From Pecten maximus (taxonomy: Eukaryota), in contig NC_047019.1 in NCBI RefSeq assembly GCF_902652985.1, positions 29,450,001 through 29,514,000 on the forward strand: DNA of 64,000 bases, written 5' to 3'. Made by a program: the position numbers and the translations under genes. Position 1 is the stretch's first letter. Every line of letters starts with the position of its first letter. Positions 25,974 to 61,366 of the stretch are shown piece by piece. A model generated the notes under the pieces. That model searched no databases, was not told the DNA's origin, and was given only the letters and a program-made list of their open reading frames with translations.

Positions 25974-26051
25974 ATGAGTAACTGTGCCGATATGATGCAT
26001 CCGCTATACCCGCCGTACTTTCCACATAAAACCTCCACCAATGACATATCG
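25974..26051 (+). CDS. vg: vestigial-like (VGLL1-3 class) coding exon 1
   Basis: ATG at 25974 reads MSNCADMMHPLYPPYFPHKTSTNDIS, resembling the N-termini of VGLL2 (MSCLDVMYQVY..PYF) and fly Vg (..SCPEVMYGAYYPY). Phase-0 donor TCG|GTAAGT at 26051/26052. Confidence 0.88.
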
Positions 26052-27191
26052 GTAAGTATGCATGCAAGTCTCAAATATTTTCATCAAAAAGAATTTTCAT
26101 TTGAAATTGATTTTCTTTCTTCTTTCAGCTTCCTCACTAAGCACGTGCCAATGGAAATAGTTTAAAAAGAAACTCGGAATTTCTGATCGCATAGTTCCGC
26201 TTTCTGATCACATAGTTCCGCTTTCTGAACAAACATACCAGCCGGTCCACGCGCGTAGGGTAACACACGGCATGATCCGTAAAACGTTTGTGGTAAATAT
26301 TTTCTCCGATACCAACAGGAATTCCACGACATGTCTGAGATTTTAGTCAGAAATAACGGTCATTTCTTTCCTCATTTCATACGATGTGCAAAAATATTTA
26401 CCGATACCTAAACCAAATGTTGTATGGTTATAAGCGACTATAACCGCCAATCCTCGATAGTGGAGACCGTATCTATAATGTTGGTGTTTCGGTGGTTTAT
26501 TGAAAGTCTATTTCGTGTGTATTTGATCTGACGGTCACTCTTACTTAGATCCCACGTGGATTATAACTTAGCCGCGGCACTACCAGGGATAGAATAAGTC
26601 CGATTTCATAATGATGGTCTTGTGACGAAAAATTTCTGAGGATTATAATTTCGGAATCATGACTGAAAGACTTATCAAAATTGTCCTCGGTCTGATTTGT
26701 TGAGAAATACATGTAGTAAATATTTCTTCGCCTTGTGAGTATTGGCAAATATATTCATTCGAATAAACCGATGGACTATACGTAAATGGTACCGACCGTC
26801 TGACAGTGAACGATCTCCATGTACATAATATTCCGTATGATCTGATACGGTCGATACGGTGTCAAACAATTTAATGTGTAATCAATTAATTTGATCTGTT
26901 TAGATATTTTTTTTTACTAATTTTACATGTTTATATTATTTCTGTACTGACAAAGAACAAAGTTAATTCTAACTATTGTATTCCTGATAACCTACGATCT
27001 TACGAGAGGAGATTACTAATCAGAGTACATTAACAATGCTTAAATAGCAACACTTTCTGACGAGTGTTTTTCCTCAAACGATATCAAATAATTTACTAAA
27101 ATGACGTCAATATTAATTTGTTTATTGTATTTTATTTATATAGAAAGATTGAAGCATTTTATAAAATATATTACTTTTTTTGTCTCCACAG

Positions 27192-27465
27192 AAATACGGT
27201 TCTTCTGGTAGTGTTCCGGTATACGACCCCGCGAGCACTTCTTATCCTTGTATCCCGGAGAGTGTGAACCTTAACGTGTCTAGGAATGCCGACGTCGATA
27301 TGGAGAGTCAGCCTAAGGCGTCCCAATACGTCAATCCGAATTGTGTTCTATTAAACTATTTTACCGGGGACACTGCCACAGTCGTGGACGAACATTTCTC
27401 ACGTGCTCTTAGTCAGCCCAGCAGTTTCACCGCCGACCGGGGTACGACGCCGCTCCGTAAAACAG
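27192..27465 (+). CDS. vg: vestigial-like coding exon 2, TONDU (TEAD/Scalloped-interaction) domain
   Basis: Pyrimidine tract + CAG acceptor ending at 27191. Encodes YVNPNCVLLNYFTGDTATVVDEHFSRALSQPSSF, the Vg/TONDU signature (CV.F.YF.GD...VVDEHFSRAL). Phase-1 donor ACAG|GTGCGT. Confidence 0.97.
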
Positions 27466-28024
27466 GTGCGTTTATTTATTTTTTTATTTTAAATATCCAA
27501 CCCCGCATCAAACGAGTGATACAACCTAGTTGTGTAGTTGACAACTTTAACACTAAAATTGGTGATATCTACACATCTAAAACTGGTGGTCGTTAAACCA
27601 TAAAACTGGTGATAATCAAATTGATAAAACCATGAAGCTGTTGATAATTAGACAGAACACAAATGTGTAGTTGATTTCACGATAATTAATTTAATGGTTT
27701 ATGGTCAATCATCACTACAAATAATGTAAATATATTACAATGTTTACAAAACGTCTATGGTTTCTGTTGTACATGTACATGTATGCATTTATTTTTTTAT
27801 GTGGTAATTAATTATTCGGATACGAACTTGGAAATATATATATATATATAAAACACCCCATCATAATGAGTGAAAATAACTTAATCGTACACATGTTATT
27901 ATTTTATATATTAATACAGTCAATGATACTATATTCAATGATAATATATTTAATGATAATATATCCAATGCCGTATTTCGTTTTGTTCGTTCTATTCTGA
28001 CGGTGCAATGGAGCTATTTCCTGT

Positions 28025-28100
28025 TCAAGTCCAATATTACACTCACGGTTGTGGGGTCATGCAAGTCCAATATTACACTCACGGTTGAGGGGTCAAGTGT
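28025..28100 (+). repeat. Short tandem duplication in vestigial intron 2
   Basis: CAAGTCCAATATTACACTCACGGTTG(T/A)GGGGTCA x2. Confidence 0.85.
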
Positions 28101-30392
28101 CCGAGATTACACTGTTTTGTTATACAAATCATTCCTATGAAGTATAACGTTTTACACATATTGATTGTACAGTCATAAGTGATAACTTAATATTATCATA
28201 AATTTCATTATTCTATACTATACAATCATACAACATCGTCAGTTTATGTAAGTGATGGTCAACTATACATATATATGTCATAACTCTTCAATACTATATA
28301 TGTACACTTATCAACTTCTTAATACTGTCAGCTATATATATTCAACAATGGTACATCTTTATCTTAATTGTTCAGTACTGTATATTTATTAGCCATTAAA
28401 CATTGTTCACTATATATATATGCCTTACCATTGACACACTTGATGCTCTTCACAAAAAACGATCTTATGTTGCTGTAAAACTGTATCTATAATTAATTCT
28501 TTTTCTATGTATTTTATGTACTCACAATATGCAAAAGGATGAATAAAAATTTTACAAAACTGAAAAAATACTATCATAGATCAACAGTTTTATTATTACC
28601 ATCCAAACCCGCTGACGAAGTACCATATCAAATACATTTTTCTGTATGTCTATACCAGGGAGCACGTGAACATACAAACCCCAGCCGTCCCCGGCTTAAA
28701 CACACGACATTTTTACAGAATATTCTAACTTATTCGCTTCAATTTCGATGGAAGCTTTCACGAACGATAAGACTTATGGCATCGTATTTGTCAATTATCA
28801 CCTAGCAAGAATTAATGACGAACAGCTGATAAACTTTACCCTCCGCACCATAGCATAACATGACTCCCCGGGGCCTTCAGAACATTCGATCCCCACCTCC
28901 CTTCACTTCTGTGAAGGATTTCAGGGGCTGGACGAGTTCTGTAAATCGAGATCCACAACAAAGTTTTGGGAATAAATATCAGAAGCGACGCGAACTGAAA
29001 CTCACGGGTGGTATAATACGAATGCTCTATGATAGATACAAGTAACGATAAGTGGAATTGTACCTTAAATAAATATATATATATACGTATCGTGATCTCT
29101 TCTAACAATGGAGAAACATGATCGGTATTTTAACAAGATACAGTTTACTTTAACACCGCTGGGGTAATAATGTACTTATGAACATTTTCTCGGCAAATGT
29201 CAAAAGAATTTCTTTAACATAGTTATACTCTCCGAGTATATTGTCTCTGGCACGAATGTATGTTTTTCGATGTTGTCAATGTTCTGTAAATTTGTATATT
29301 GTGTATGTGTAGGATACTGATGAGTCGAAAGACTCAAAGTTAATGAAGAACTTGAACATTTGTATTATGTTTCAGGTCCTAGATAGATAAAATCATATCA
29401 GAAAAAATACATAATATACTGATCACTGAACCGAGAGATGAACGGTGAACTTATGTTAGATGAAAATTATTAAAGATAGATAATTTTTCACTTTGTCGTT
29501 CTGTTTTACAAATCATGCAAGATAGAATAAATAATTTCAGAAGTCTATTTACATAATTATGTATTATTTGTTTAATCGATGGTTTGATTTTTAAAATGAC
29601 GTTAAGATATAAAATTGTTGATTATTGACGCTGAAAGATACAGGCCATCGAATGGCTCGATGGGTTTGAACTGTTCGTGGTATTTGTTGATAACTTCAAA
29701 TATTTTTTGTTTAGTTTCTTAATGCGAGAAAATCTAGTACATTTGTTAAATAGTTAAAATCTTACAGAGAATCAAAAGTCAGACATTACTGATATATTAA
29801 ATCACACCATTTAAATGATATGTCGAATTATTATTATTATTAGTTTTATTTCTCCTGGTATAGATTTAAGTGAATCATTGATTTGATTTGAACGTATCTT
29901 AATTATTGTTTAGACACAATTGGATTGGGCACAAGTTTTTAACAACTTATAAAAATCATCTCCACAAATATCATTAATATACAAACAAACAAAATAGACC
30001 AACGGAAATGTACATTTCAGTATCTATGTTATAAAATAAGATATGGCCGATGTTGAATGATTTATTAGTTTGAGATTTGTATTGAGTTCAGTTAAACATT
30101 TCACGCACGAGCTAATGCTCCAAGACGGATTTACAGAATTTTCAGGTGATTGTTGATAATTAAGTGCACTTATGATATTGGTTTATTGGTTTTTATTCGG
30201 GCATTTCAAAACATATATAGTTACAAAATTGAATATAAAGAATAGGAAATAGAAACAAGTGTTTCAGAAACTTATGTAAATCTATCACCTTAATAATATA
30301 TGATATATTTCAAGTTGGGCGGATTTTGACATGATTTGTATTTATATATTACACACAATCTTATATATCCTGTACATTTACGTTACTTACAG

Positions 30393-30805
30393 ACAAACCA
30401 CTGATGTGCCACCGGAAGTTACCGCCATCATTTTGGAACAGTTCCTACCGTCCCCCAGCCACCACAAATCCTCTGGGGTCCTCAGGGGGCGGGCCTGGAT
30501 TACTCCCGGGACACGTACTTCAGTCCCTCCTGGTACTCCTTACAGAACAACTGGCCCGTATCGACTGCCCTCCCACGGACACTCGGACCTCGGACAAAGT
30601 CTGTCATACTCGTCCCTAGACACCTCCAGCAAGCTCAGCAATCCCTATCAATCCCTTGTGTTTCCCTCCAGTTATGATTCCAGACCGTCTAAATTTGACT
30701 TTTCAAAAAACATGGATCCCCTCAGCGGATCTAGTGGCTATTACGGACTTTCCAGATTAGGGATGGATTTCCCATCCAAAACCAATATTGAGAGTACTGT
30801 TTCTG
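30393..30805 (+). CDS. vg: vestigial-like coding exon 3 (two apparent 1-bp frameshifts as assembled)
   Basis: TTACAG acceptor, phase 1, continues DKPLMCHRKLPPSFWNSSY (the conserved VGLL 'R.LPPSFWNS.Y' motif). Ends at phase-1 donor CTG|GTAAGT. Needs correction at G5 (30485-30489) and C3 (30555-30557) to be continuous. Confidence 0.88.
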
Positions 30806-31827: not shown

Positions 31828-31874
31828 GCCTTGAGTACCAACTCCAATCGGCACGACGAGAACTGTGTTGGTGA
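31828..31874 (+). CDS. vg: vestigial-like terminal coding exon 4
   Basis: TTTTACAG acceptor, phase 1, reads GLEYQLQSARRELCW-stop. Similar to the invertebrate Vg C-terminus (GLE..Q....KDLYWF). Confidence 0.85.
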
Positions 31875-32239
31875 CGTCACAGCAACGTCTAAGACAAACT
31901 TCCGGTGTCAAGTGCGCATACAAAATGTGACAATGATCTCACATGGGTCTTTCTTGGTGTTTATAATTATACGATTCATCCGATTGTGACTCCATTTTCT
32001 TCACGCGCAATAGTTGATTATGATCATCATTGTCATCATGGACGAGACTGCGAGGATTTACTGGACACGTGACTCCACGTTCGTGCGATAAATTCATTCG
32101 ACACATAAATGTGGGTACGTACCAGGGTTAACTGGTTACCACATGATTGTGTGACAGGTTACATTTCACTTGCATACAGGAAACGGTACCCAATAGTTTC
32201 GTTATAGACCACGTAAAGGGGAAGACTGTTTGGTCGAGA

Positions 32240-32468
32240 AGTAACTCGGCCGTCCAAGTCAACCGTCCAACTGTTGGTGATAACACTCGACCGTCCAAGT
32301 ATTAGTGATAATTCGTCCATCCAACTGTTGGTGATAATTCGACCGTCCAAGTATTAGGGGATAACTCGACCGTCCAAGTATTGGTGAGAACTCGGCCATC
32401 CAAGTAGTGGTGATAACTGGATCGTCCAAGTAGTGGTGATAACTGGACCGTCCAAGTAGTGGTGATAG
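32240..32468 (+). repeat. 27-bp minisatellite in the putative vestigial 3'UTR, ~8 copies
   Basis: Unit GGTGATAACTCGACCGTCCAAGTA(G/T)T. Confidence 0.85.
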
Positions 32469-32981
32469 TTATGGTGTTGTGCCATGTTATCTGCAGACTG
32501 TACTGGTAAATAGTATACAATCAAATCTCGTATTCCTCGAGATGTGGACACCGAATTCCAACGATCTAAGGATGTACCTGGTATTAATGTTAAGACATTT
32601 CCTGAAAGCATACAGAACGACTAACTTTATAAATTAATTGATATAAACATTCCTCCCCGTATTGACTTCATCCAACTAGATAATCTTCATTTAACAATTA
32701 CATATCACCAGCAACCTGGTGTATCCATATCTCAAACCAAACATGTCAGGTGTAGTGACACACAGTTAAAACAATCCAACATATAGGTCTTGTACAAATG
32801 TATATAGGTTTGTGTGTTTTCCAATATCCACTTGGCCGGCATTGGTCAGTGTCTAAAGTGATGAAATCCTAACCAAGTAGGGATCAAACTGTAATAGGAT
32901 CAAACCCAGTAAGTTAGGATCTACAAAACGTTAGTTTTCGTTAAAAGTTGAACAACTGTATCAAGGACATATGTGTCGTTT

Positions 32982-33073
32982 CTGTTTTAAAAGATTATTT
33001 CATTTTATCCAAGATGTTCTTTCATCGTTTGTGTTTTAAAAGATTATTTCATTTTATCCAAGATGTTTTTTCA
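32982..33073 (+). repeat. Tandem duplication
   Basis: TGTTTTAAAAGATTATTTCATTTTATCCAAGATGTT x2. Confidence 0.85.
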
Positions 33074-33831
33074 TACCTGTATTGAAACACATAAAACAAT
33101 ATATGCTAAATATAATGGACACCGTGAAGTAAAAGCTTGGTTTCTATGACGTTGGTGACGTCACAAATGGCAGACATGGCTCCCGCCCAGAACAGTGTCA
33201 AGTTCGGACAGAGAGATCCAACAAACGTTACGTCTTTGACGCTTCTATCTCAAAGAGACCTTTAAAATTCCTGGAATGAAGCAGGGACTTTTATACTGAT
33301 CACTGAAAGTCTTTGATTCATTCTGCTTCCATCAGTAGGGCGGCAGATAAAACAAGCTAGATCGGTTTTCATAGATTTGAATTGCAGGTCTAAGCATTCC
33401 TATACGTATAACTTTATAGGAATCGGAACTTTGTCTCCAAACAGTATTTGCATACGTAAATACGCTAACTAAAGTCATTGATGTTTATTTTACCACATAA
33501 GTTAAATTTTAACTCTGAAGTAAACAATCGATTTAGTGTGACGAACGTTGTAAACCTTATCATTTGTTACAAGTGGATCTGCGTTGTTAGATTGGTCAGG
33601 TAGTCGGTCCAATGGTTGCTATATGTCCCGTTACTACTGTCGACCAGTCCTGTGGGGTGTCTGGTAAACTTTACCTAGTATATATAACTATTATTGCTTA
33701 TTTTCAACATGACAGATGTATATTTTTTCCCATGGAAATTGATGTGTATTTCTCTATGAACATTGTTATAAATATGGCTGTATATTTCACTGTGAGAATC
33801 AAAGGGTGTGTGCTGTGTGAAAAGAACGAAG

Positions 33832-33837
33832 AATAAA
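33832..33837 (+). terminator. Candidate polyadenylation signal of vestigial (implies ~2 kb 3'UTR)
   Basis: AATAAA followed ~20 nt later by U/GU-rich ATGTTTTGTTGTTTATTT. Confidence 0.4.
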
Positions 33838-36800
33838 CGAAAGAAAACTTTAAAACAAATGTTTTGTTGTTTATTTGAAATATATTTCGTGACATACGTA
33901 AGCTCTCTGTTTAGTTAATATATCTGCTATTGTTTTGCTATAGAAATGTTGCCTAGTGTTCTCCAGTTCCCGAGGAAGCTCTGGTTTGTCTTTGTATTTA
34001 AGATTTGGTATATTGTGTATTTATTTTGTATATTGTTAATTTGTGTTTTGGCACTATTCTCTCTTGTATCATTGGGCTAACATATGATCACACTATTCCT
34101 CATAATTAATATCCAATGATCCCAAAGAGGCCTCTAAATACGACATCTTCCTCAATCTTACACCAGGTTTCTTTTTTCTTAGTTTCTCCTTAGTTTTATA
34201 TATCCCATCCGAAATTGATACTGTGCATTCATCCCCGATCAATTTGTTTTAAAATATTTAAGACAATCTACTAAATTCCGATAAAGCAATGAGCTTGAAA
34301 CGAATAGATCTAAATATATATTTATATAATCTTTGGTGTCTGTATAACAGTCGGCACCGTTAGCGGACCATGACATTTAAATACCTACCGAATCACTGAT
34401 ATTAATTACTCAATCTTCTCCGGTCAGGGAATAGAATGTCCGGCATCTAGTATATACTGGAAATCAGGATGATTAGAACAGAGAGAAGAGCAGTTACCCC
34501 TACACACAATTAAGATTTCACATTCATTACCAAAATTTGTCGTTTTCAAGATAAATAAGTGATAAATTGGATAAGAGATCGTTCCACGGGGATTGGGGGA
34601 AGTGTGCCGTCACTAATACACTCCGCGCTGACAGGAGTTATAATGAGACAATCTGAGCTGTCGTTAGGGCGCATTAATTTGTCACGGACTACTTTCCACA
34701 CCTGTCGCCCAACTAAAATACTATCTTATCGTCACCGTACGGACTGGGCGTGTTTCTATTCTGGACCAGTGTCACTCATCTAGTTATTGACTGCCATGCG
34801 ATAATGTGTTTTCCAAGATTTTGAAAATTCCGAACCTTCGTTCATACATTTATTGCTACAAGGGAAACACGAACATGTCAACACCAAACTGGACAGCAGT
34901 CTCTGTTTGCCTCATAATTCAATATCTAACTGAATTTTCCATAAATCTGTATTATCTAGAACGCTTATTATAACCCCCTTTTTATCTTATTTACGAAATT
35001 GATAGCAATAAATGTTGATAGTTTTAAGTAAATGCAGTGTAAAACACGGAATGTGTATTTAACGACGGAAAGACTCGCACAACAGAAATATACATTTCCC
35101 CAATTACATTCAATTTTCATAAACCAAGAAAATATTATCAATATGATTTGATCATTCAATGAAGTTTCGGTTCTGGTGTATAGGGGAAATTGATATTCTT
35201 GCTAACCTTACAGATGCGCGTTACCTTGTATCGCGGTACCTGTATCTCATTAAGGTAGATAACGAGATAGTCCTGGACCGATGGACTTTGATCAGTAGCA
35301 GGTTTCCACCAACGAGCAATACTATTTACATTTTAGAACAAGAGCTGTTATATCTTTTTATCATCAAAACATATGTTTGCCAATTAGCTGAGTAAATTAA
35401 ATATAGACTATGTTAGTTTAATTTACCTCAGTTAATGTAACCGTATGTTATGATATATCAGTTTATTAAATATAGCAACTTATAATAAAATACCCGTAGT
35501 GAAGGGAACATTTTCTCTGATGTTTCCAGAAGGCATTATTTTCCAATTTCAATCAACATATTGTTCACAAACTATATGCCAGCAATGTTTCCAAAATATC
35601 TTTTTCTTGGGAACATTGATGTTAATACTAGAAATAGTTAATTGTCTTAGAAATCCATAGACACATCAATTGTATTTGCAGAAACTTCAAGATATACATA
35701 AAATATCCACATTTTCTGGGGAAAATGACGTTTGCTGAAGAAAATTCAGAAATTCTTCAGATTGTTATTTTTTCTTGATGCTTATCGGATAATTCAAGGT
35801 ATATCATATCTGTCAGAATAGATATTAGTTTTCCTTGGAATATTTATCTTGGCTGAAAAATTGGAAAGATTTTCCTGTATAAAATTCAAGGTAATTCTTC
35901 GAATGAATATTCGTTTCTTTGGAATATTGATGATTGTTGGGGGAAAATTAAGATTTCTATCAAAATGCATTGTATAAATCCCCCCCCGCCCCCCCTAGGT
36001 TTACATGATACTTGTTCGAGAAATTTTTCAGAATAAATGCTCCATTTTCCTAGGAAAACAGACGATTGCAGCTAAAAATCAGAGGTATGTTCACAATATT
36101 ATTGTTTTCCCTGATGTTTTAGAAATTTGAATGCTAGAGAAAATTCAAGGTGTTCCTCAGAATATTATATGGTTTTGCCGGGGAATATTGATGTATAGAA
36201 CATTATCAGTATGTCGAGTATATTGAGATTTTATACAACCACTGTGGATGTAGTAATGAGTATCCTATAAAATACAATCACATGTCAATGATTACCTTAT
36301 TGATGTTAAAATAATGTTATATCTCAACAAGTTCTTGGGTCATTTTGTTCGGTGATTTATTATCGACTTTAGTCGTGGGACGTCAAATTTAAGGAGTTAG
36401 GTGATGCTGTGGAAGGGGGCTGCCATTTCTGACACCGTTACGGGTTAATCCAACCCCGATAAGTAAATATTCCCTAAACACCGATCTGATTAGACTGGCC
36501 CACCAATAACACCGTTAACAGTAGCACGCGTCAGACCGACATGTAATGGTAGTAGGTGAAGGGATATGTGAAATACGACCATATTCCCAGAGGTAATTAA
36601 AACTCGTTAATGAAAGCAAACCGTCTACTGGTCAGAATGGTGTTGTCACTCATTGTGTTAACAAAATTAATGTCAAAAATTCTTCAGTGGGATACGGAAA
36701 CTCTACAGAGTAACATTATTTCACTTAATGCATCAATATAAATATTTTTGGTAATTTATACTTTCCCATGAGATAAGATGGTTTTATTTGCGGCAAACCA

Positions 36801-38029
36801 ACATAGAATGATTAACTTATATGTATTTATTTCCTCGTTAAGTTTAGGTGAAACTGTTTGGAACTCCCTTAAGAGGTAACACCTATTATATAAAATGTTC
36901 ATCGTCGTATCTGATTCAAATGTATCTAAACAATCTATAACAAAACGCTATTTCTACTGAGAAAACATTATTTCGACTTTATGGTAAAACTCTATGTGGA
37001 AATATAAAATGTACTGAGAGAGGGGAATCATGTGTTAATCATGTTATGGCATTAATGTTATTTATCGTGTTGTTCTGTTGTTATTATTATACTAATGTGG
37101 GCGTGTAGAATACTTTACTTTAACATAGCAATGTTAACAAGTTTGAATTCCACAAACTAAGGCCATCTGTTATCATACTTTAAGTAATAAAGTCACAAAA
37201 AAAACAAAGGTGGGGTTAGTTTTTAATTAGATCAGAATAGAAAGTGGACGTTTAATGTGTGGACCTGCCATGTTAAATTTTCTGTTGCTCGTCCAAGCCG
37301 GTGGTGCTCGCTACTTTCTCACCAATACATTCGGATTTCTATATACTACACGTACTCTATGCCACTAGTATTACATAGCCTTTCAACGCGCCTCACATTC
37401 TCCCACACGTAAGTAATATACGGGCACTACCCCTCCGCTCAGACTATGATTTATCTTCCCGTAATCCCCGGGGGTATCCCCGACCCCCTGCGGAAATGTC
37501 GTTCCCGCGAGATTCCTCTTGGAAGCTTGTCATTCGTGGGTAAGTGGGAATAAATAAGTGACAGATTATACGGACTTAGCAAAGTCGTTACATTTGGACT
37601 TTCAATACAGCGAAAAGGAACCATCGACAATGTAATGAGTATTCGTCTAATGTTCGCACCGGCCATGAAAAGCTCAAAGAGCCCGAAAGTCATAACATAA
37701 TTACATAGTAAATTACTGAAATCATATCTGAAGAAAGACTTTAAAAATGTGCGATTTTCTGGTTTGCTTGCTTCTAATGCAGAAGTATTAATGAGGTAAC
37801 TTGTAGGGCAGTAAATCGCGGTTTATTGCCCGTTGCGTTCCAACACTCTGGCAATCCTTCGCTACTACTGTATACTAAGAGCACTAGGAGTACACATCAC
37901 CCCGTCACAATCCTTGGTTTGTTGGCAGTCACCAAGTTTGTACTGCACAACTGTTCTATATAAAAAGAAGTTGTTTGTTCATACATACTCCACACGGTAA
38001 AACACACAAAGAAACAATACCAGAATGCC

Positions 38030-40604: not shown

Positions 40605-40840
40605 CATATCTAATTACTCAGTATAATAAGGGTACATTGTATGATAGTTTATATCATATTATCTTATATCATTATTTCATGTCTAATTACTCAGTATATA
40701 ATTGATACATTGTTTAATATTTTATATCATATTATCTTATATCATTATTTCATGTCTAATTACTCAGTATATAATTGATACATAGTTTAATATTTTATAT
40801 CGTATTATCTTAGTTATCATTATTTTATATCATTATTTTG
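40605..40840 (+). repeat. ~74-bp AT-rich triplication
   Basis: TCTAATTACTCAGTAT...ATATCATATTATCTTATATCATTATTT x3. Confidence 0.85.
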
Positions 40841-41545: not shown

Positions 41546-41590
41546 TGGTATATATTTACATTTACACTGCAGCCCCACTATATAACTCTA

Positions 41591-46400: not shown

Positions 46401-46459
46401 TTCGCATTACACGTGTTTGCGTCTTTGTACATGCCGAGTTGCACCTAATGTTTGTCTTT

Positions 46460-47730: not shown

Positions 47731-50700
47731 TATATTCCATCAAATAACCAAAATATTATATTAGATAACTATCAATACCAATGGCTATAAAGTTACATGT
47801 AATATAACTGCTATTTTGTATGTTGGTATTTTCCCCGCTAACACACACATAAGTTTTGAAACCTTTCATCCTTCATGACTCTCAGAAATGGACATTAAAA
47901 TTTCACGTGTTTACAGCCAAGGGCCTCCCTTTACGACAAAGCCAATAACTTATACTAACCACAGACATAGGACCACCTTTCACAATTTTATGTCACTTTA
48001 TTTCTGTAATTAAGAAATACACATTAAACTAAATAACAAAATAAGCACATTTCATGGTGCAATTTCAAAATCATTTGCACATAGAAGTTAATTCGATACA
48101 CCCAGGAATTTTCTCATTTCTGAAAAAACTGTAACTTCCCAATCCAAATTGGACAACTTTTCCGTGTCATTTTCACGATGCCGTATCGTATCCACAATTA
48201 ATTCAAAACTTGCCATAGACATTTTTTACATATGACAAGTTACTTTGATGTGGGTAGGAGCCAAATTTACACAGTTACACAAGCGAAATTGTCTCCCAAT
48301 GGGGTCTAGGTAATTGTGGGGATGGCCACAGTAGTCAAGCGCCCTTCATCTCCTTAATTTACATCTGAGAAAAATCTAAATTTAATAACTCCCTTTCTGG
48401 GCTTTAGGTAATTGTTATTGGGTCCCTAAAACATACCCTAAGTAATATCAACGCTACAAATCTACACATATAGACAAATTATTCGCTTACAAACAGGACT
48501 GGTTTCATAGGTACAGGGGGTAATATCCTCAAGTAGTCTAATACAGTACTGGAATTAATTCACAACTTGGGGTTAAGTAGCGATACACAGTAAATAATCG
48601 TCCATTTAAATCTTACTTGTGATGTCTCATTAAACATAAGCCCAGTTACAAGTAACCCCCACAGATCTCGCTATCCTTACTTTTTCTTTTTCTCTGCGGC
48701 CAGATTAAACATCTAACTTCACCTCCACGGTAAGAAATCTACCTAGAGCTTATGTGCAGTTAATAATTACATTTCGGGACAAGATATAGTGCAAACTCTG
48801 TTTTTCCCACACTAAAATTAGACTTACAACTGTTCCGAACCAGCTTTGGAATGATTAATTAGTTTTTAATGTTCCCAGAAAAACAAAATATGTGCCATTC
48901 AGAGTAGATTTCAGTAAAATAAAAATGCTTATCCTACACGTTACTAACTACTCTGTAAGTCGGTTGCCTCATAATTGATTACAAAACTACACTGGGCAAA
49001 TCCGCTGAACATTTAAACAATTTATATAATAACAAATCTGAACATTAATTTGGATATCATTCTATCTCATTATTTTTATTATAATTAAACATGATTTTTT
49101 TCTGACAATTTTTTAGGAGAAATATTCTTCAGATGATATAAACACATGCCTTATTAAATTAAATACATTTTACAGTAATACCTCATCTAAAACACTGCTT
49201 AACTAGTAAATTGTTGCACGTACATTGATTTGGCAAGAAATATGATGACTGTTTTTTTCAACACAAAAATAATTTTACAATAAACAGCAAAGATTTCTGC
49301 AAAATTTGAAATAATTGTATTTGAAATAGGAATTTCTAATTAAATACATCTTATATGCGGTTAGACCCGACGAAACCGTACCAGTGTACGGTTTGACGTT
49401 AGACATACGTTGTTAGTTAAAAAAATGACATTGTTAGAAACAACGATAAACAAACTGAGTGTATCATATATATATATGACGTGGGGATATGTTTGTTTAA
49501 TTCTAGTTTAACATTCATTATTCCGTACATAATGTATACATTTTTGAGAGTGTTTTGTAAAATTGATTTCGAGCTACATTGTAATATTGTCTTCGCTTAT
49601 TATCAATTTTAAAAGAATAGATTTTTCATCACCTCAGAAAATAAGTGCTTTCATTTTCATATGAAGTCATTTCGTGTAAAGTAATTTTAAAAATTTAAGT
49701 CATTAATTAGAATAAACATTAGAATGGTTAAACACGTTAAAAATAGCACCTCCAATCTGCAAAACTAAAATTCACACCAAAAGATAAAACTTCCTTAGGT
49801 GCCAAATTCTATTACATATAAATACAAAATTTTCTGGACAAATCTGGAAACAATGTTTTACGATATATATATTAAATTTAACATATTTAATTATAATTTA
49901 TTTTATTTCCTCGTTAAACAGGTATTTCATGTACAGCAAAGTCGTTACTGTAAAAATACCATTTAGCCATTGGATTTTGTCATTGTTCGTGAATGGTTAG
50001 TCAGTACTACAGACCAATATATATAGACAACAGGAATGCGGACAGGCAAACTGTTTTGGTTGAATGTGAAACATTATACAAAGATGTTTACTAACTAACT
50101 GTGAAACCATGTAAATGATATGGTTGTTACTGTCCGAGAAAGCGAGACGAATTGGGGAGTAGTTCGGACGGTGACAGTTTCTTTATCGCAGATTCTCTAC
50201 AGCAGGGTAGGGGTTCTCAATGAAGCAAACTAAATATCATATGACCAACTATCAACAAAACAACACCACACAAAATATCATCAACCCCTTCCCGTGAAAG
50301 AAACAAACTCACATACTCAAATACCAGCCATCAGATCAGTTAAAACCTCAGAAACACTTAATAGCTTATTCTAAATCTAATAAAAAAATTAAAAACAGAT
50401 TCAAACTAAGTATGTAGAACTCTTGGACTCGGACATTCCTTTCAAATTGGGAAAGGAATTAATATAAACTTGCTTAAGCTTGTTTTCTATTTCTAAATTA
50501 TAAAAATGTATGTATATTTGAATTTTGAATAAAAATATTGTTAAACTAATAAGGCATTGCAAAGTAATATAGCTATATGGTAGCGCATTGATACATGTAG
50601 CTACTCCGGGATCCTATAACTAGTAAGTCCTATACCTACACCAAACACGTGTTTACCGTTAATATCTTATGCCGTACAGTCAGGAACTGAGTTGTGCTAT

Positions 50701-53029
50701 TCAAATGGGAAGTGAACATGAGTTTAGTAAGTCTACATACTACGGAGACAGGTATTGCTCCGATGTCAGAGAATGCTCGCGTCATACACGGTGTTCCCGT
50801 AATGACTTGAAGTCTACTACCAACTTACCAAGCCATTGTGCAGGTGGTGGCGTAACACACGTACTAGTTCATATTATTACATAAAATTAACATAATATCT
50901 GTTGCATAGGCAGGTGTTATGTCCTTGACCAGATGCTAAATCCCATGTCAACCCTACAAATATTCCCATCAATACCCGCACCATTGAATATTTAACGCCT
51001 TGTTCTCATACCGATAGCAACGTTTATAACAGCAGGTCTTACTGACACTAGTTAAATGTCATTGTTCCCCACATCAACCAAGATTTAGCACCAAAATACG
51101 TATCTGTTTCAATTAATCATTTTCTGGCTAAAATCCCATGTGATGATAAACACCCTGGTGTTTTGCATATGTCCACATAAAATAAAATAAATAAATATGG
51201 ATCGGGATCACTTAAACAACGAATCACACGACGTGACAAGCGTCTAACGAAAATATCACGAATCGTATCGCCAGTCAGGGCGCGGGATCTCTGGTCTAGA
51301 GGAGGAGGGACATGGGAATCGAAGTTACTTTAGGTGAATTTGGACCTATCACGATGTTTTAAAGCGATTGTTAGGCGTTATGGTAAGATCAAAATTTCCT
51401 ATTTCAGTTTAGGAACTACCTGAATTAAATGAATTTTAGAACAGATGTCAGAACTTTCAGATCTGTTTTATGGATCCCGCCCCCATTTTTCGTGATATTC
51501 TTCAGATAACGATAATAATGTTATCTGATGGCATACATGGGTTTTTCTTGAGAAGGAAAGAAACAATGTGCTACCTGTATTATTTTACCGTTTTTACATA
51601 ACTGGTATAAAGTCTTTGGGCATAAAGAAGACTTTATGACGATTGACTGGAATTTTTATAAGAATGTCGCTCGCAAGCTTATTATCAAAGTAATCAAAAT
51701 TCGTGATAATATCAACGACGGTCGTCTATTTCCTCGATCTATTTGGTGTTACTGATCTCCAATATCATATCCCCCATTTTCAAGTGTTTGCTTGGAAATT
51801 TAAATCTCGGCCGAGTCCCCAAACCTCGTCTCTGTGGTGAAGCCGTATCATGTGGGAGGTAGGTAATTTGATCAACACACCAATAGACAAGTTTTGGGTG
51901 TATTCATTTCAAGATGTTTTCCTTAGATGTAAACCAGGTACTTGACAAGGTTAGTTTGTCACCGCTAACGGTGCTGATGAGATGCCACTTGAAACAAGTA
52001 GCCTCCCTTGGTGTAGAAATTCCAAGCTGTTCAGGGAGGTGCAATTGATATGGGAAACTGCATATCTATAATGTCATTGGACAATATCAAAACCATTCCG
52101 CATTCTTAGTTTTTCAAACGACTGACTTTTGCTTTGTTTATGTTTAGACCACATACCACACTTCTTTATAATATTGAACGCAACTGGCCACTTTTATGGG
52201 AACTGAATTCAGTATATAACACCGAGTGTGCCTTATTTTTATTTAGTAGCATTCCAGTAAGAAGGTTGTTTGATCTTTGTAATTAGGTGGTCAGAATTAT
52301 ACTGTGTGTACGTATACTAGTACAGCTATGCTAAAACGAATAATTAGTACGAATATTAATATAGGTACTTACAGCTACATCGTTATATGTATGTATATAT
52401 ATAAATTTGAGGTAGATAAAGAATTAATGATATCAAAAACATAAAGAAAAAATGTTCGAAAGCTTTAGTACACAGGAAAGTTGATCCAAATGATATATGC
52501 TGGTTTGAATTTTCTGTTGAATTTACTAGAACATTCTAATTCAGAAGAGACTCGATATTCAAACTAAGAATAAGGATAACCACTTCCATCAGATTTATTT
52601 CTGTATATAATCGGTATAAGTGATTTGGAGAGAAAATATCAGTATTTAATCGTTATTTATCCAGATACACCTAAAAAGTTCCGCCCTAGGATAACATGAA
52701 TATTAAAAACTATCTTATTGGTTTATCATCTCTAACGTAGAAATAAAGCATTAAATCTTGTGGTTATAAAGACTAGCCTATCAAAAACCTCTTAGTAAGG
52801 TTTTCAGCCAAACTATATAAACTGTCATTGTTTTCAGTATGACGTGATATCCCCATTAATTCTTGCACCGATCACGAGTCGCTCATTTAATTTTCTATGC
52901 TGTTTCACATGTGAAGAAAACATTTATGATTTCAGTCTGCCCACTTCATATTCTTGTTATTTCGGGAAATGGCGACACTTTTGTTGTTTTGGGTTTTTTC
53001 TTTTGAATCAACGTTAAGCTTGAACTCCA

Positions 53030-53146
53030 ATGTCTTTTGTACAGTCCTTTGTCCTTGTGTGTGGAGGATGTCATACAGTTGTCTGTTGTATAGTCCTTTG
53101 TCCCTGTGTGTGGAGGATGTCATACAGTTGTTTTTGTACAGTCCTT

Positions 53147-53181
<35 letters not shown>

Positions 53182-53682
53182 AGGATGTCATACAGTTGTC
53201 TTTTGTACAGTCCTTTGTCCTTGTGTGTGGAGGATGTCATACAGCTCTTTTGTACAGTCCTTTGTCTGTGTGTGTGGAGGATGTCATACAGTTGTCTTTT
53301 GTACAGTCCTTTGTCTGTGTGTGGGGGATGTCATACAGTTGTCTTTTGTACAGTCCTTTGTCATTGTGTGTGGAGGATGTCATACAGTTGTCTTTTGTAC
53401 AGTCCTTTGTCATTGTGTGTGGAGGATGTCATACAGTTGTCTTTTGTACAGTCCTTTGTCATTGTGTGTGGAGGATGTCATACAGTTGTCTTTTGTACAG
53501 TCCTTTGTCTGTGTGTGGAGGATGTCATACAGTTGTCTTTTGTACAGTCCTTTGTCCCTGTGTGTGGAGGATGTCATACAGCTCTTTTGTACAGTCCTTT
53601 GTCTGTGTGTGTGGAGGATCTCATACAGTTGTCTTTTGTAAGTTCCTTTGTCCTTTTGTGCGGAGGATGTCATACAGCTGTC
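53030..53682 (+). repeat. 49-bp minisatellite (~13 copies) with embedded (TG)n at ~53151-53179
   Basis: Unit GTCTTTTGTACAGTCCTTTGTCATTGTGTGTGGAGGATGTCATACAGTT. Confidence 0.96.
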
Positions 53683-54291
53683 TCCTATTTCATGTTATTT
53701 CGTGTTACATTTCTAAACATATTTGTTATAAAAATGTCACATTGATATTAACAGATTTTCTAGAGCACATATTGTGAATATCTTTGGACAGGTCTATTTC
53801 GGTGCCGATCTCAGGAATTGATACACCAGGTGAACCTGTGTTCACAACGTATTGAACATGACATCAATGGTGGCTCATGGTGGAGGGAGTTGTAAAGGAT
53901 ACACATCACAGGTAATATATCCCAACAAAAGTAAGGCATACTCGACATAGTTTCTAGATAGCTTTGTACACAATCAGTATATCACACTGATTTTAAGTAT
54001 ATAGTAGCCTCATTGTCAAGTAAGGGACAATTATCTTGATAACCTGTATCAACAACATTTACTGATCCCAATGGTGAACTTTCACTGTCAATTTTCCCAT
54101 ATTATTTTTATCACATCACTGATAATTGATAGACCAGTTATGACAACAAACACATCTTAGGATTACAGAAGTGTAGTGAACAGGTAGTGTGTATAAAGAA
54201 GAAAAGGTGAAAACGTTTACACTGTAATCTGTACAGACAAGAAAATACAAAAATCTGTGAAAATAATCAGCAAGTCATTACTTAACCTCTT

Positions 54292-55866
54292 CACAAGTCA
54301 TGAGTGTCTATCTCTACACAAGTCATCAGTGTCTACCTCTACACAAGTCATCAGTGTCTACCTCTACACAAGTCATCAGTGTCTACCTCTACACAAGTCA
54401 TCAGTGTCTACCTCTACATAAGTCATCAGTGTCTACCTCTACACAAGTCATCAGTGTCTACCTCTACAGAAGTCATCAGTGTCTACATCTACACAAGTCG
54501 TCAGTGTCTACCTCTACACAAGTCGTCAGTGTCTACCTCTACACAAGTCGTCAGTGTCTACCTCTACACAAGTCGTCAGTGTCTACCTCTACACAAGTCG
54601 TCAGTTTCTACCTCTACACAAGTCGTCAGTGTCTACCTCTACACAAGTCATCAGTGTCTACCTCTACACAAACCGTCAGTGTCTACCTCTACACAAGTCA
54701 TCAGTGTCTACCTCTACACAAGTCATCAGTGTCTAACTCTACACAAGTCGTCAGTGTCTACCTCTACACAAGTCATCAGTGTCTACCTCTACACAAGTCA
54801 TCAGTGTCTATCTCTACACAAGTCATCAGTGTCTACCTCCACACAAGTCGTCAGTGTCTACCTCTACACAAGTCATCAGTGTCTACCTCTACACAAGTCA
54901 TCAGTGTCTACCTCTACACAAGTCATCAGTGTCTACCTCTACACAAGTCATCAGTGTCTACCTCTACACAAGTCATCAGTGTCTACCTCTACACAAGTCA
55001 TCAGTGTCTACCTTTACACAAGTCGTCAGTGTCTACAGCTACACAAGTCGTCAGTGTCTACCTCTACACAAGTCGTCAGTGTCTACCTTTACACAAGTCG
55101 TCAGTGTCTACCTCTACACAAGTCATCAGTGTCTACCTCTACACAAGTCATCAGTGTCTACCTCTACACAAGTCGTCAGTGTCTACCTCTACACAAGTCG
55201 TCAGTGTCTACCTCTACACAAGTCATCAGTGTATATCTCTACACAAGTCATCAGTGTATATCTCTACACAAGTCATCAGTGTCTACTTCTACACAAGTCA
55301 TCAGTGTCTACTTCTACACAAGTAATCAGTGTCTACTTCTACACAAGTAATCAGTGTCTACCTCTACACAAGTCATCAGTGTCTACCTATACACAAGTCA
55401 TCAGTGTATATCTCTACACAAACCGTCAGTGTCTACCTCTACACAAGTCATCAGTGTATATCTCTACACAAGTCATCAGTGTCTACCTCTACACAAGTCA
55501 TCAGTGTCTACTTCTACACAAGTCGTCAGTGTCTACCTCTACACAAGTCGTCAGTGTCTACCTCTACACAAGTCATCAGTGTCTACCTCTACACAAGTCA
55601 TCAGTGTATATCTCTACACAAGTCATCAGTGTCTACCTCTACACAAGTCATCAGTGTCTACCTCTACACAAGTCATCAGTGTCTACCTCTACACAAGTCG
55701 ACAGTGTCTACCTCTACACAAGTCATCAGTCTCTACCTCTACACAAGTCATCAGTGTCTACCTCTACACAAGTCATCAGTGTCTACCTCTACACAAGTCA
55801 TCAGTGTCTACCTCTACAAAAGTCATCAGTGTCTACCTCTAGACAAGTGATCAGTATCTACCTCTA
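54292..55866 (+). repeat. 25-bp satellite, ~63 copies
   Basis: Unit ACAAGTC(A/G)TCAGTGTCTACCTCTAC. Confidence 0.99.
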
Positions 55867-57243
55867 ACATTATTATATTGACAGGAAAATATATTACCTG
55901 CAGGTGCATAATGATTTAATACTATATTGATGAATTAAAGCAAAAAAATGTGCTTAATCCCTGTTGAGGCAAGAACAACATTAAAATCGTGAATATTTTG
56001 GTAAAATAAGACAAACAGTTCAATTTGAGGTTTCTTTTAAGGATGATTGACAGTAAAAAGTGATTTTCAATTCCATTATTCACATTTTAGCAAATGTATA
56101 CTGTGCTTTAGAACACCTAATTCATTAAACAAAATCCATGTTAGGGTATACTTTCCCCTACTAAAATCTAGGTTAGGATGTATATGTGACATTTTCACTA
56201 ACCTCAATCCTGGTAGGGATATGTATATATACTGATTTCATTTTCCACAATCCAAGTAGGGATATGTACATATGCTAATATCCTCAAATAGGGAAATATA
56301 TATGAAATTTTTTCCTAACTAGAATTCAGATGTGCATATTTCATTTCCGTCAGTCTAAGTAAGAAAAGTGTAACAGATATATACAGCGTGAAATTTAATC
56401 ATTTTGAATTACAAAATAATTCTAATTTTAATTTTTGTGATTAGCGTTTATTGTATCTTTTAAGCAATCTGTTCCAAGGGAGATAACCAAAATTAAACCA
56501 TACAAGAACGAAAAACCTGATATTGGAAGGGAGGCAACCCAATCAAAAACGCATTGTATAATGGTGTAACTTCCATAATATTTACACAAGTACTAGCTTC
56601 CAAAAAAGTTAAGAGGACTACCAACAGCATTATCTATGAGTAAGCATTATAGTTAAGTTTGAGATAGATGGGTATGTTGAAGCTTTTGAAGTCAGTGGAG
56701 TTTCTCTCATATGCATATCTCTCCCAAGTCTATCAATTTCCGACCATAACCAAAAAAATCAGCACCACTAATCATGCGATAATAGTACAATGTCCAACAA
56801 TCCTGCTGGAACAATTGTATCTCTGATTTTATCAACCACATGATGTTTTTATTGCAAATAATTTCCCCTACTACAAATGATGACATCACATACTGAAGGT
56901 AACCAATCACGTAGTATAAGCAATGCTAGCGAGGCAATCAAAGTAGATAGATCATTCATATACATGTGCAATCCCCACAATATGGCTGGTACAAAGACCA
57001 AAACTAATGCTACCATTCCTGGATGGTAGTGAAACCTTTCTCTGATGTTAAAAGTATTAATGTGTGATTTATGACATCAAGGGAATTTCGTTTTGTTGAG
57101 TGTATCAAGTAACTTAAGAATGTTCAGAATTTATTAAATACATACCTTGAAGATGAGTATTATCACTGCTTACCTAAAGGCTCAAAAATATCTTAATATA
57201 TACCAATTACTACATAGTTACAGTATATACTGTCATAACTTAC

Positions 57244-57352
57244 TTCAAAATCATTTGGATCAAACATGTTCTTTAAGACAACAACTTTCTCATTTTTGGG
57301 TCGAACAGAACCTTGTCCAAGCTCTTTTTTCTCTGGTCTCCAGTCAAACAAT
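57244..57352 (-). CDS. HTATSF1: HTATSF1 coding exon 5 (start of UHM/RRM2)
   Basis: LFDWRPEKKELGQGSVRPKNEKVVVLKNMFDPNDFE. Phase matches exon 4; phase-0 donor GAA|GTAAGT. Confidence 0.95.
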
Positions 57353-58012: not shown

Positions 58013-58182
58013 TTTTCTTGTTTCTCCTTGAACTTCCGCTTGTCTTTGTTGCTGAGTTTTTTTCTCCGTTTGCTGGGATCAAAATCTCCCTTCATAGTGA
58101 ACTTGGCCAGCTCTACCTTGATCTTATGACCTCTGAGCTCAGAATCATCCAGAAACTTCCTCGCAAGTTCCACAGACTCAAC
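58013..58182 (-). CDS. HTATSF1: HTATSF1 coding exon 4 (RRM1 C-part and linker)
   Basis: VESVELARKFLDDSELRGHKIKVELAKFTMKGDFDPSKRRKK...KQEK. TTCAG acceptor, phase-2 GTAAG donor. Confidence 0.96.
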
Positions 58183-59830: not shown

Positions 59831-60039
59831 CTTTATATAACAGCAGCGCCCATCACCTTTCGGATTTCCTTCACTATCCTTGTAAAGTTTGAGCTTGAGA
59901 CCTCGGCTGAGTGGGTCAGCCATGATGAGGCCGTATTTGCCCATCAGTTCTCTGAATTCGTCGTCAGTGATATCCAGTGGCAGTCCAGACACATATACAT
60001 TGGTGTTCTTTGTTTCATCAACATCAAACCAAGAAGGAG
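59831..60039 (-). CDS. HTATSF1: HTATSF1 coding exon 3 (RRM1, N-part)
   Basis: WFDVDETKNTNVYVSGLPLDITDDEFRELMGKYGLIM...KLKLYKDSEGNPKGDGRCCYIK. CTGTAG acceptor, AAG|GTAAGA donor. Confidence 0.97.
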
Positions 60040-60660
60040 CTACAGAGACAAGGCAAAATAGAATGTACATATAACTTACAATTTACATTGACTCAAATTT
60101 AAATAGTTTATATATGAAGTAAGATGAAAATCTTTAACATGAACATTTAGTCATTGACCCAAGGAATTTAAGCATTGTCACAAAGCATGTTCATATACTA
60201 ACTTTGAAATCCAAATCAAAGACTCCGCAGTAAATTATCAATAACTAATATACATGACTGCACCATTGAAATACACTTTAAGTAATGGCAGAAAAGAAGG
60301 TTCAGAACATGCTTAGAAATGGTAGGCAAGTCAGCATGATATCGTTTTGGTACAAGTTCATTTTAACTACACAGCAGTGCCCTTGAATAATTAGCCTGAT
60401 TTGATTTATTTGTCATTTACCATTATCTTTAAAGGCATTTACCTAGGAATTGGTCAGTTATTTATGTGAACCAGTCAGATAGCTAACAGGAAGCCTGAAG
60501 TTAGTACATGGTGTGTGTATATGTCATCACAAATTTCAATTTTTCTCAAATGGTGCAGAGAAAATATGACAGTATAATGGAATCAAAGCCCTTGGATTTT
60601 GAATATATTCAATTCTCTGACAGACTATTAAACTCAAATTTATCAAACATTTTTAATTAC

Positions 60661-61078
60661 GTTCTTCTGGCTTTTTGGGTTCAGATGCCTTTTTTCGTTT
60701 CTTTCCCTTCTTTTCCTGCTGACTTTCATCTGCTTCCTTTTCCTCTGAGTTTTCTTGGTTGTAATAATCATATCCACAATATTCTACTGCTTCTTTGTGT
60801 CCATAGTAGTATGCATAGTAATCAAAATATTTCTTCCTGTACTCATCACTGTTTTCATCAACCTCCTCCTCACTTCCTTCCTCTCCACTGCCCTTGGCTT
60901 CCGTACCAGGATCCCTCTGACCACCATAGTACTTCTTACAGTACTGATCATACCATTCCTTGTACTCAATGCTGTTGATGTCTGCTGGAGGAGCTGGGAA
61001 ATCTGAAGTATCAGGCCTAGGGCTGGCCTCTGAAGCACCATAGCTCATCTGATATCGGGCTATAAAATCATCATCAAT
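60661..61078 (-). CDS. HTATSF1: HTATSF1 coding exon 2
   Basis: TTATAG acceptor. IDDDFIARYQMSYG (human ITEDFIATYQANYG), then an acidic/Tyr-rich segment and basic KKGKKRKK (NLS-like). Phase-1 donor C|GTAATT. Confidence 0.92.
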
Positions 61079-61240
61079 CTATAACAAAAGAAATGTAAAA
61101 GTAAATCAATTGACCCTTCAATGAATCAGTTAAGCTCTAAAAAGATCTATTAATACTATAATTTTTTTCTTTTTCTTTTTGGTATATATATTCCACAGAA
61201 AGAGATCTGGTCAAAATATCAAAAATTTAGATAGACCTAC

Positions 61241-61366
61241 CTTTGGAAACCATGCTTGTTTCTCATCATTCCATTCATACTCGGTCCCATCCTCATCAAC
61301 TTTGGTTTTTCTCTTTTTCTGTTCTTCCTCTTGTGCCAGCTGTGCCTCAAAATCAGATTCCTCCAT
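61241..61366 (-). CDS. HTATSF1: HIV Tat-specific factor 1 homolog, coding exon 1
   Basis: MEESDFEAQLAQEEEQKKRKTKVDEDGTEYEWNDEKQAWFPK matches the Tat-SF1 N-terminal F..QL...E and YEWD..K.AWFPK motifs. Phase-0 donor AAG|GTAGGT. Missed by the ORF track. Confidence 0.93.

Follow-up and report, generated by a model that had tools for sequence, protein, structure and literature searches.

The gene for the developmental cofactor vestigial and the housekeeping gene HTATSF1 are neighbours in the scallop Pecten maximus, and their linkage very probably predates the split between protostomes and deuterostomes. We analysed a window of 64,000 nucleotides from the 918-Mb Pecten maximus assembly (G000:C5:29450001-29514000, on contig C5 of 51,398,101 bp; positions below are those of the window unless another sequence is named), in which a vestigial gene, termed vg-A (+, 25974-31874, four exons), converges with HTATSF1 (-, 61366-41950, seven exons). 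Their stop codons (31872-31874 and 41950-41952) are 10,075 bp apart, and the interval, read in its entirety, holds minisatellites and conserved non-coding blocks only, with zero genes. An earlier note on this DNA, which described a vestigial gene and HTATSF1 as immediate convergent neighbours with about 10 kb between their stops, is thus borne out, and the outer positions it gave, 25974 and 61366, are exactly the ATG of vg-A and that of HTATSF1. The single vestigial gene of that note is real, but the window shows just one of two tandem paralogues; the other, vg-B, lies outside it, and the local order reads HTATSF1 ->, <- vg-A, then vg-B ->. The account that we favour, with moderate confidence as a whole, combines an ancient microsyntenic pair, an inverted bivalve duplicate of vestigial and a vestigial regulatory landscape that would hold the pair together.

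In other species, gene coordinates were taken from exact annotated proteins, and the sequence read extended 10 kb to either side of each gene. The two families are arranged as follows:

Tegillarca granosa (ark clam), CM056596.1: HTATSF1 at 26,150,910-26,172,597 (+); a 254-amino-acid (aa) Vg_Tdu gene (-) lies 9.4 kb downstream, convergent
Tegillarca granosa, B-type vestigial gene: 26,223,501-26,229,340 (+), 50.9 kb from HTATSF1, tandem, giving the three-gene layout of Pecten
Haliotis rubra: HTATSF1 at 320,064-379,784 (-) and vestigial at 227,623-246,733 (-); 73.3 kb apart, tandem, vestigial downstream
Physella acuta: HTATSF1 at 242,834-248,929 (-) and vestigial at 172,902-187,797 (-); 55.0 kb apart, tandem, vestigial downstream
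Branchiostoma lanceolatum (amphioxus), OV696686.1: HTATSF1 at 4,048,791-4,066,886 (-) and vestigial at 3,959,017-3,959,713 (-); 89.1 kb apart, tandem, vestigial downstream

This comparison of neighbours and orientation in other molluscs and in amphioxus supports the proposal, made in the earlier note, that the linkage dates from the bilaterian ancestor: order and strand are the same in Tegillarca, Haliotis rubra, Physella, B. lanceolatum and, for vg-B, Pecten, so that HTATSF1 is followed by a same-strand vestigial gene in two bivalves, two gastropods and amphioxus. In genomes of 0.5-1.4 Gb, a given gene would come to lie less than 100 kb from another by chance with a probability near 1 in 10,000 per lineage, which excludes convergence and identifies the arrangement as inherited. 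The three-gene layout occurs in bivalves of two orders, and in Tegillarca nothing separates HTATSF1 from the gene of vg-A type, an immediate adjacency; its loss in this species, suspected from the locus tags (KUTeg_006611 versus 007526/7), was refuted by the coordinates, by which the genes adjoin. Zero genes were called within 10 kb of HTATSF1 or vestigial in Haliotis, Physella and amphioxus, where the middle 35-69 kb were unread, and six-frame scans of the 10-kb flanks in the other species found no additional exon encoding TONDU, the TEAD-binding motif of vestigial proteins. HTATSF1 and both vestigial genes of Mizuhopecten report an identical longest contig size (443,668 bp) and are probably on one scaffold; likewise, chromosome-sized contigs of equal size are reported for HTATSF1 and vestigial of Argonauta hians and of Haliotis cracherodii. 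In Ylistrum balloti (locus L023), the 10-kb flank stops about 1.6 kb before the expected vg-A site, and no vestigial gene was seen in it. At human Xq26.3, both genes are presumably on the + strand, VGLL1 some 20 kb downstream of HTATSF1. For the human X chromosome, one paper lists markers in the sequence cd40lg, vgll1, htatsf1 (10.1101/2024.10.30.620815), and a paper on X-linked acrogigantism places HTATSF1, BRS3, VGLL1, CD40LG and ARHGEF6 among the genes of the domain beside GPR101 (PMC12890961).

The origin of the convergent layout is explained by vg-B. A genome-wide scan with the Pfam family Vg_Tdu (PF07545) returned exactly two matches, vg-A (59.7 bits) and C5:29431480-29431572 (-), which is vg-B (65.3 bits); each gene thus has one TONDU match, unlike VGLL4 with its two short TDU motifs. 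vg-B occupies G000:C5:29423153-29432446 (-), equivalent to window coordinates -17554 to -26847 and hence 18-27 kb left of the window, and is intact, with four single-frame exons whose identity to a further Mizuhopecten protein (P0285, tblastn) is 87-92%. It stands head to head with vg-A at a distance of 43.5 kb and shares the strand of HTATSF1, with its ATG 59.5 kb downstream of the HTATSF1 stop; vg-A and vg-B together occupy about 113 kb in which there is no other recognised gene. The next recognisable gene past vg-B is an open reading frame with a BIR (inhibitor-of-apoptosis) domain, about 44.5 kb beyond the 3' end (L005 5965-8595).

The class of these genes, which the earlier note had left to a VGLL tree, is confirmed by a maximum-likelihood tree of 32 single-TONDU proteins, from which VGLL1 and VGLL4 sequences were left out. 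The Pecten genes, represented by their Mizuhopecten orthologues, fall in a mollusc clade named 'vestigial-like 2' at NCBI, opposite a deuterostome clade that comprises amphioxus, Saccoglossus and VGLL2/3. Among bivalves, the proteins of A-type (scallop, mussel, ark clam, oysters) and those of B-type (scallop, mussel, ark clam) form sister clades (100/99), which nest together in the mollusc clade with the HTATSF1-linked Haliotis rubra and Physella genes and with Argonauta (100/100); by this position, the duplication is bivalve-specific and older than the split between scallops, mussels and ark clams. The convergent layout is therefore derived, vg-A being a bivalve-specific inverted duplicate between HTATSF1 and the ancestrally placed vg-B. 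This settles the question of orientation raised by the earlier note: vg-B still has the place and polarity of the ancestral gene, in tandem with HTATSF1, and vg-A is the inverted insert that converges with it. The amphioxus gene clusters with that of Saccoglossus and with VGLL2/3 of vertebrates (98/97), a placement consistent with a single chordate pro-orthologue of which VGLL1, itself not in the tree, kept the HTATSF1 side; for vertebrates, the shared neighbourhood suggests that VGLL1, rather than VGLL2 or VGLL3, stands at the ancestral locus. A second mollusc vestigial clade (Haliotis cracherodii, Gigantopelta, Mya, Solemya; P0301, P0302, P0320, P0324; 99/98) was also recovered, of which a member was not detectable in the Pecten genome; the H. 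cracherodii gene of this clade sits on a contig equal in size to that of HTATSF1.

The exons of vg-A were mapped by tblastn with the Mizuhopecten orthologue P0273, to which the window exons are 86-96% identical:

25974..26051 (+), exon 1, ATG at 25974; P0273 aa 1-26, 96%; RNA joint 26050/1 to 27191/2, GT..AG
27192..27464 (+), exon 2, TONDU (TEAD-binding) motif; Pfam, PDB entry 5z2q, P0273 aa 27-122 at 86%, spliced RNA contigs X6 record 23 and X10 record 2
30389..30805 (+), exon 3, frame broken by two spurious bases; three tblastn pieces in three frames
31828..31874 (+), exon 4, stop 31872-31874; P0273 aa 259-274, 94%; RNA joint 30804->31827, GT..AG

Over its residues 49-79, the open reading frame around exon 2 (27192-27464, +) scores 57.7 bits with Vg_Tdu (E=1.1e-15; cut-off 27 bits), and its TONDU motif aligns to the VGLL1 chain of 5z2q; from this motif, vg-A is predicted to bind TEAD/Scalloped. 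As assembled, exon 3 follows the Mizuhopecten protein only with two shifts of frame, and vg-A was accordingly considered as a pseudogene, a candidate ruled out by independent DNA and spliced RNA contigs. Briefly, Logan contigs from four public runs (DNA and RNA) were aligned to 25900-31899. The base at 30491 is absent in the DNA runs X3 and X5 (separate samples and studies) and in the RNA run X6, the base at 30555 is absent in the DNA run X5, and the exon-3-spanning contigs X3 record 13, X5 record 21 and X10 record 2 carry two gaps each, consistent with sites 30491 and 30555. Since DNA and RNA contigs alike are without single bases at about 30491 and 30555, these are reference errors and vg-A is intact; the two one-base insertions in the reference probably explain why homologue searches yield no clean P. 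maximus vg-A protein. One RNA contig joins 25933-26050, 27191-27461 and 30389-30492, and further RNA contigs join 27212-27461 to 30389-30710 and 30804 to 31827, the tabulated joints (26050 to 27191 and 30804 to 31827) both being GT..AG; vg-A is thus transcribed and spliced as modelled. Over introns 2 and 3 (28100-28700, 29100-29500, 29900-30300, 30900-31300), contigs of the DNA runs reach depths in the thousands, and these stretches are copies of high-copy repeats, probably transposable elements.

The two insertions in exon 3 show that local reference errors exist, and nothing else speaks for a scallop-only chance neighbourhood or an assembly artefact, an explanation that the cross-species data refute and to which we assign virtually no probability. 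The same layout is found in the independently assembled ark clam, the Mizuhopecten genes report contigs of the same size, two gastropods and amphioxus share the linkage, and independent DNA contigs cover the vg-A region.

The partner gene is defined by seven GT-AG exons whose translation is identical to the annotated Pecten maximus 'HIV Tat-specific factor 1-like' protein (P0159, 517 aa), with introns of 162, 621, 1648, 660, 13,822 and 950 bp in transcript order. All exon rows below follow this exact model:

61241..61366 (-), HTATSF1 exon 1, ATG at 61366
60661..61078 (-), HTATSF1 exon 2
59831..60039 (-), HTATSF1 exon 3, RRM1; also PDB match to human HTATSF1 and Pfam RRM_1
58013..58182 (-), HTATSF1 exon 4
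57244..57352 (-), HTATSF1 exon 5, start of the UHM
43422..57243 (-), HTATSF1 intron 5, which splits the UHM; 13,822 bp, seven conserved blocks, two minisatellites
43332..43421 (-), HTATSF1 exon 6, GT-AG
41950..42381 (-), HTATSF1 exon 7, end of the UHM and acidic tail, stop 41950-41952; also PDB match

The RRM1 exon (60039-59831, -) matches residues 122-191 of human HIV Tat-specific factor 1 (6y50_q, E=7.6e-27), at 96 bits compared with at most 37 bits to Sxl and Hu proteins. The UHM exon (42381-41950, -) matches residues 306-376 of human HTATSF1 from solved U2 snRNP structures (E=5.9e-18, 69 bits) and also the isolated UHM structures 6n3d and 2dit. The gene has the architecture that defines the HTATSF1 / Tat-SF1 / Cus2 family of 17S U2 snRNP components, an N-terminal RRM followed by a UHM-type second RRM and then an acidic tail. 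It is single-copy (the last exon matches itself alone in the 918-Mb assembly), and orthologues were recovered throughout animals by protein-representative and named homologue searches.

One feature of HTATSF1 recurs across these animals. Upon mapping each species' own HTATSF1 protein to its locus and aligning the proteins, the intron that interrupts the UHM just after the counterpart of Pecten aa 344 proved to be the largest HTATSF1 intron in all eight species, with these sizes:

Pecten, 13.8 kb
Ylistrum, 13.5 kb
Tegillarca, 12.5 kb
Haliotis rubra, 29.0 kb
Argonauta, 35.9 kb
Branchiostoma lanceolatum, 12.1 kb of an 18-kb gene
Spea (frog), 3.5 kb
Physella, 1.3 kb

An intron that is constantly the largest suggests long-standing content at this place, whatever its nature. 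In Pecten, the same intron contains a marked compositional boundary, seen when CpG observed/expected ratios were computed by sliding windows and again with minisatellites excluded. In invertebrates, a shortage of CpG is the mark of gene bodies that are broadly expressed and methylated in the germline. The ratio is 0.8-1.1 over about 99 kb (window -46 kb to +53 kb), a domain that covers vg-B, vg-A, the intergenic DNA, HTATSF1 exons 6-7 and the block-bearing part of intron 5 and that, judged by its composition, is probably germline-unmethylated; the drop from about 53 kb to the start of HTATSF1 persists after minisatellite exclusion. The relevant stretches are:

53000..53700 (no strand), CpG-content boundary; unique DNA at 0.88-1.07 on its left and 0.26-0.35 on its right (5' part of HTATSF1)
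31875..41949 (no strand), vg-A/HTATSF1 intergenic region, 10.1 kb; CpG observed/expected 0.90, five conserved non-coding blocks

Because CpG depletion marks methylated gene bodies, the 3' third of HTATSF1 looks like part of a vestigial-type unmethylated domain. Ylistrum has the same mid-gene switch in HTATSF1, and overlap of the CpG domain with HTATSF1 is demonstrated in scallops only.

Non-coding conservation was assessed by blastn of Pecten against the Ylistrum balloti locus, keeping collinear unique matches outside exons. Twelve blocks were obtained, all 69-91% identical over 0.1-1.1 kb:

43987-44173, 44414-44547, 45394-46435, 47929-49051, 50030-50226, 50638-50963 and 51851-52108 (no strand), seven blocks in HTATSF1 intron 5, about 3.3 kb
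34430-34739, 35049-35190, 36421-36540, 37182-37943 and 39332-39991 (no strand), five intergenic blocks, 71-84% identity
45916..46017 (no strand), deep core of the 1-kb block, common to the homologous Tegillarca intron and inverted relative to the host gene

In the HTATSF1 coding sequence, Pecten and Ylistrum agree at 61% of fourfold sites and at 86-87% of codon positions 1 and 2, so that the best block, 1,046 bp at 90.8%, is conserved above protein-coding positions. Ten of the twelve blocks were checked for substitution pattern (intergenic blocks 34430-34739, 37182-37943 and 39332-39991 among them), and in these the pattern is non-coding, mismatches being without three-base periodicity and most gaps not multiples of three. 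The 1,042-bp block at 45394-46435 is single-copy in the Pecten genome. Its core matches Tegillarca by blastn at 77.6% over 107 bp (E=5.5e-13; 0 matches in a reversed-sequence control), and the three-species alignment of the core has long invariant runs that include TAATTGAATTA and CACGTG. Its inversion would be easier to reconcile with an element that works in either orientation than with a sense-strand RNA or a signal for splicing. No block was found by blastn in the gastropod, cephalopod, amphioxus or frog loci, where an nhmmer profile of the core gave a sole, non-significant match (E=2) in the homologous Haliotis intron.

Such blocks, and an unmethylated intron 5, might instead belong to HTATSF1 itself, for example as an internal promoter or in the control of splicing or of the 3' end, or to an intronic non-coding RNA. 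The blocks do lie inside the HTATSF1 transcription unit, and the same intron is large in amphioxus and Argonauta, whose CpG profile shows no separate domain. We nevertheless consider this explanation quite improbable: the deep core is inverted relative to its host gene between scallops and ark clam, Rfam and tRNA scans of the window gave no match, similar blocks run on outside the gene through the intergenic DNA towards vg-A, and the CpG-rich domain is continuous with that over both vestigial genes.

Under the account that we favour, the ancestral layout, in place before the protostome-deuterostome split, would have been 5'-HTATSF1-3', a gene-poor interval of about 50-90 kb, and 5'-vestigial-3' on the same strand. 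In pteriomorph bivalves, vestigial then duplicated, and the extra copy, vg-A, lies in inverted orientation between HTATSF1 and vg-B. The cis-regulatory landscape of vestigial would fill the interval and, in scallops at least, take in the 3' third of HTATSF1; any break between the two would separate vestigial from its enhancers, and the pair would for that reason be retained. In terms of the genomic-regulatory-block model, HTATSF1, a ubiquitous U2 snRNP factor, would be the bystander. That regulatory constraint is the cause of the linkage is an idea we regard as plausible and slightly short of probable.

The linkage could also be inherited and selectively neutral, with no break having happened between the genes and with the blocks and large intron serving other ends. 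Bivalve, abalone and amphioxus genomes are known to keep much ancestral linkage (e.g. PMC3514665, PMC8851819). Moreover, the CpG switch and the dense conserved blocks, by which a regulatory block would be told apart, are confined to scallops, and gap sizes range from about 20 to 89 kb. Neutral retention nonetheless seems unlikely to us when the same order and strand are kept in five species from three independent lineages (bivalves, gastropods and amphioxus), to which human would presumably add a fourth. The interval also remains large and gene-free where read, it survived a local duplication with inversion unbroken in bivalves, and the homologous HTATSF1 intron is the largest in eight of eight species.

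A regulatory reading may be carried further, to a bilaterian-wide block in which the UHM-splitting intron would have harboured vestigial enhancers since the bilaterian ancestor and the vestigial domain of scallops would override gene-body methylation in the 3' third of HTATSF1. If true, this would explain why scallop, amphioxus and frog alike have their largest HTATSF1 intron at this site, and why HTATSF1 was kept by VGLL1 but by no other vertebrate paralogue; we consider it doubtful, though a serious candidate. The placement of vestigial enhancers inside HTATSF1, as the earlier note proposed, agrees with the conserved blocks, the CpG boundary in intron 5 and the always-largest homologous intron. 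Other observations weigh against it, and against regulatory retention more broadly. HTATSF1 of Physella spans 6 kb only, and intronic enhancers thus cannot be a universal requirement. CpG-rich DNA starts only past the end of HTATSF1 in Tegillarca and Physella, a mid-gene CpG switch was not found in the Haliotis, Argonauta and amphioxus loci examined, and dense conserved blocks are seen in the two scallops only. These blocks could serve HTATSF1 or an unannotated RNA just as well as vestigial. As for the linkage itself, the unread 35-69 kb in the middle of the Haliotis, Physella and amphioxus gaps may hold other genes, and the species scored are molluscs and amphioxus only. The frog Spea has neither a gene call nor a TONDU motif within 10 kb of HTATSF1, which a human gap of presumably about 20 kb makes uninformative. 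Finally, the enhancers described around VGLL1 in human pituitary are situated within that gene or on its telomeric side, and not in HTATSF1 (hg19 coordinates of those inside VGLL1 in PMC12890961).

Cofactors of the vestigial/VGLL family act with TEAD factors in programmes of wing, muscle and epidermis, and the control of their expression is little known outside Drosophila. The order and orientation kept from mollusc to chordate mark an ancestral control region of vestigial, running from the 3' end of HTATSF1 to the vestigial promoter and possibly reaching inside HTATSF1, and supply candidate elements such as 45394-46435 with its core 45916-46017. The pair would also offer a clean case of a developmental regulatory domain coexisting with a housekeeping gene, in scallops with a gene-body-methylation CpG signature that ends midway through HTATSF1. 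Conserved microsynteny and regulatory blocks are already well established as a phenomenon (PMC3514665). The HTATSF1-vestigial pair was not found in the literature searched or in the supplements of PMC8851819 and PMC9023564; the supplements of PMC3514665, PMC7530604 and PMC4729200 were not covered, so that a prior listing is possible. No paper combining HTATSF1 with microsynteny was found.

Around the two genes, the window holds the following further features:

1..25973 (no strand), right-hand 26 kb of the 43.5-kb gene-free vg-B/vg-A interval; repeat-derived open reading frames only, CpG observed/expected about 0.8-1.2 outside satellites
10203-14462 (no strand), minisatellite, 22 bp x 193, in the vg-B/vg-A interval
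20806-23707 (no strand), minisatellite, 40 bp x 72, in the vg-B/vg-A interval
53031-53683 (no strand), minisatellite, 49 bp x 13, in HTATSF1 intron 5, coinciding exactly with the CpG-content boundary
54285-55866 (no strand), minisatellite, 25 bp x 63, in HTATSF1 intron 5
58676-59815 (no strand), minisatellite, 15 bp x 76, in HTATSF1 intron 3

About 7.7 kb upstream of the HTATSF1 start, beyond the window, a 299-aa open frame (+, window coordinates 69089-69985; L013 5089-5985) shows 85% DNA identity to Ylistrum; it matches nothing in Pfam and probably belongs to the following gene as an exon. On its 5' side, HTATSF1 has neighbours that vary between species (a GCFC-domain gene in Physella, a DUF498 gene in Tegillarca), and the conserved block therefore does not reach that way. 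On the far side of the locus, a retroelement reverse-transcriptase open reading frame lies farther out than the BIR frame beyond vg-B (L003 2929-4140). Elsewhere, the Argonauta vestigial gene model spans 142 kb, and HTATSF1 of Haliotis rubra carries three copies resembling exon 4 in one intron region (L024 18462-18578, 20286-20411, 30241-30423), which represent either exon duplication or an assembly artefact.

Among known systems, vg of Drosophila is a single-TONDU cofactor of Scalloped/TEAD under several modular enhancers, among them the intronic boundary and quadrant enhancers; the case differs from the present one in that the fly enhancers lie inside vg itself, and to our knowledge fly vg is not linked to an HTATSF1 orthologue. 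Genomic regulatory blocks, made of a target and a bystander, were reportedly described by Kikuta et al. in 2007. The scallop locus resembles such target-plus-bystander blocks (Irimia et al. 2012, PMC3514665) in linking a developmental cofactor to a housekeeping gene across phyla, with non-coding elements in a bystander intron and in a gene-poor interval; it differs in being a candidate block recognised from sequence and in a deep non-coding conservation that extends only from scallops to ark clam. In VGLL4-ATG7 (block 526, 'Bilateria novel', Robert et al. 2022, PMC8851819), another gene from the broader vestigial-like family has likewise stayed with a housekeeping neighbour across bilaterians. 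It belongs, however, to the VGLL4 class with two TDU motifs, has another partner gene and is an independent block. At human Xq26.3, the same two families, HTATSF1 and VGLL1, stand side by side in what we take to be the polarity of vg-B, the gastropods and amphioxus; vertebrates differ in having three single-TONDU paralogues, of which only VGLL1 keeps HTATSF1, whereas the scallop has two bivalve-specific paralogues, one of them inverted between the ancestral partners.

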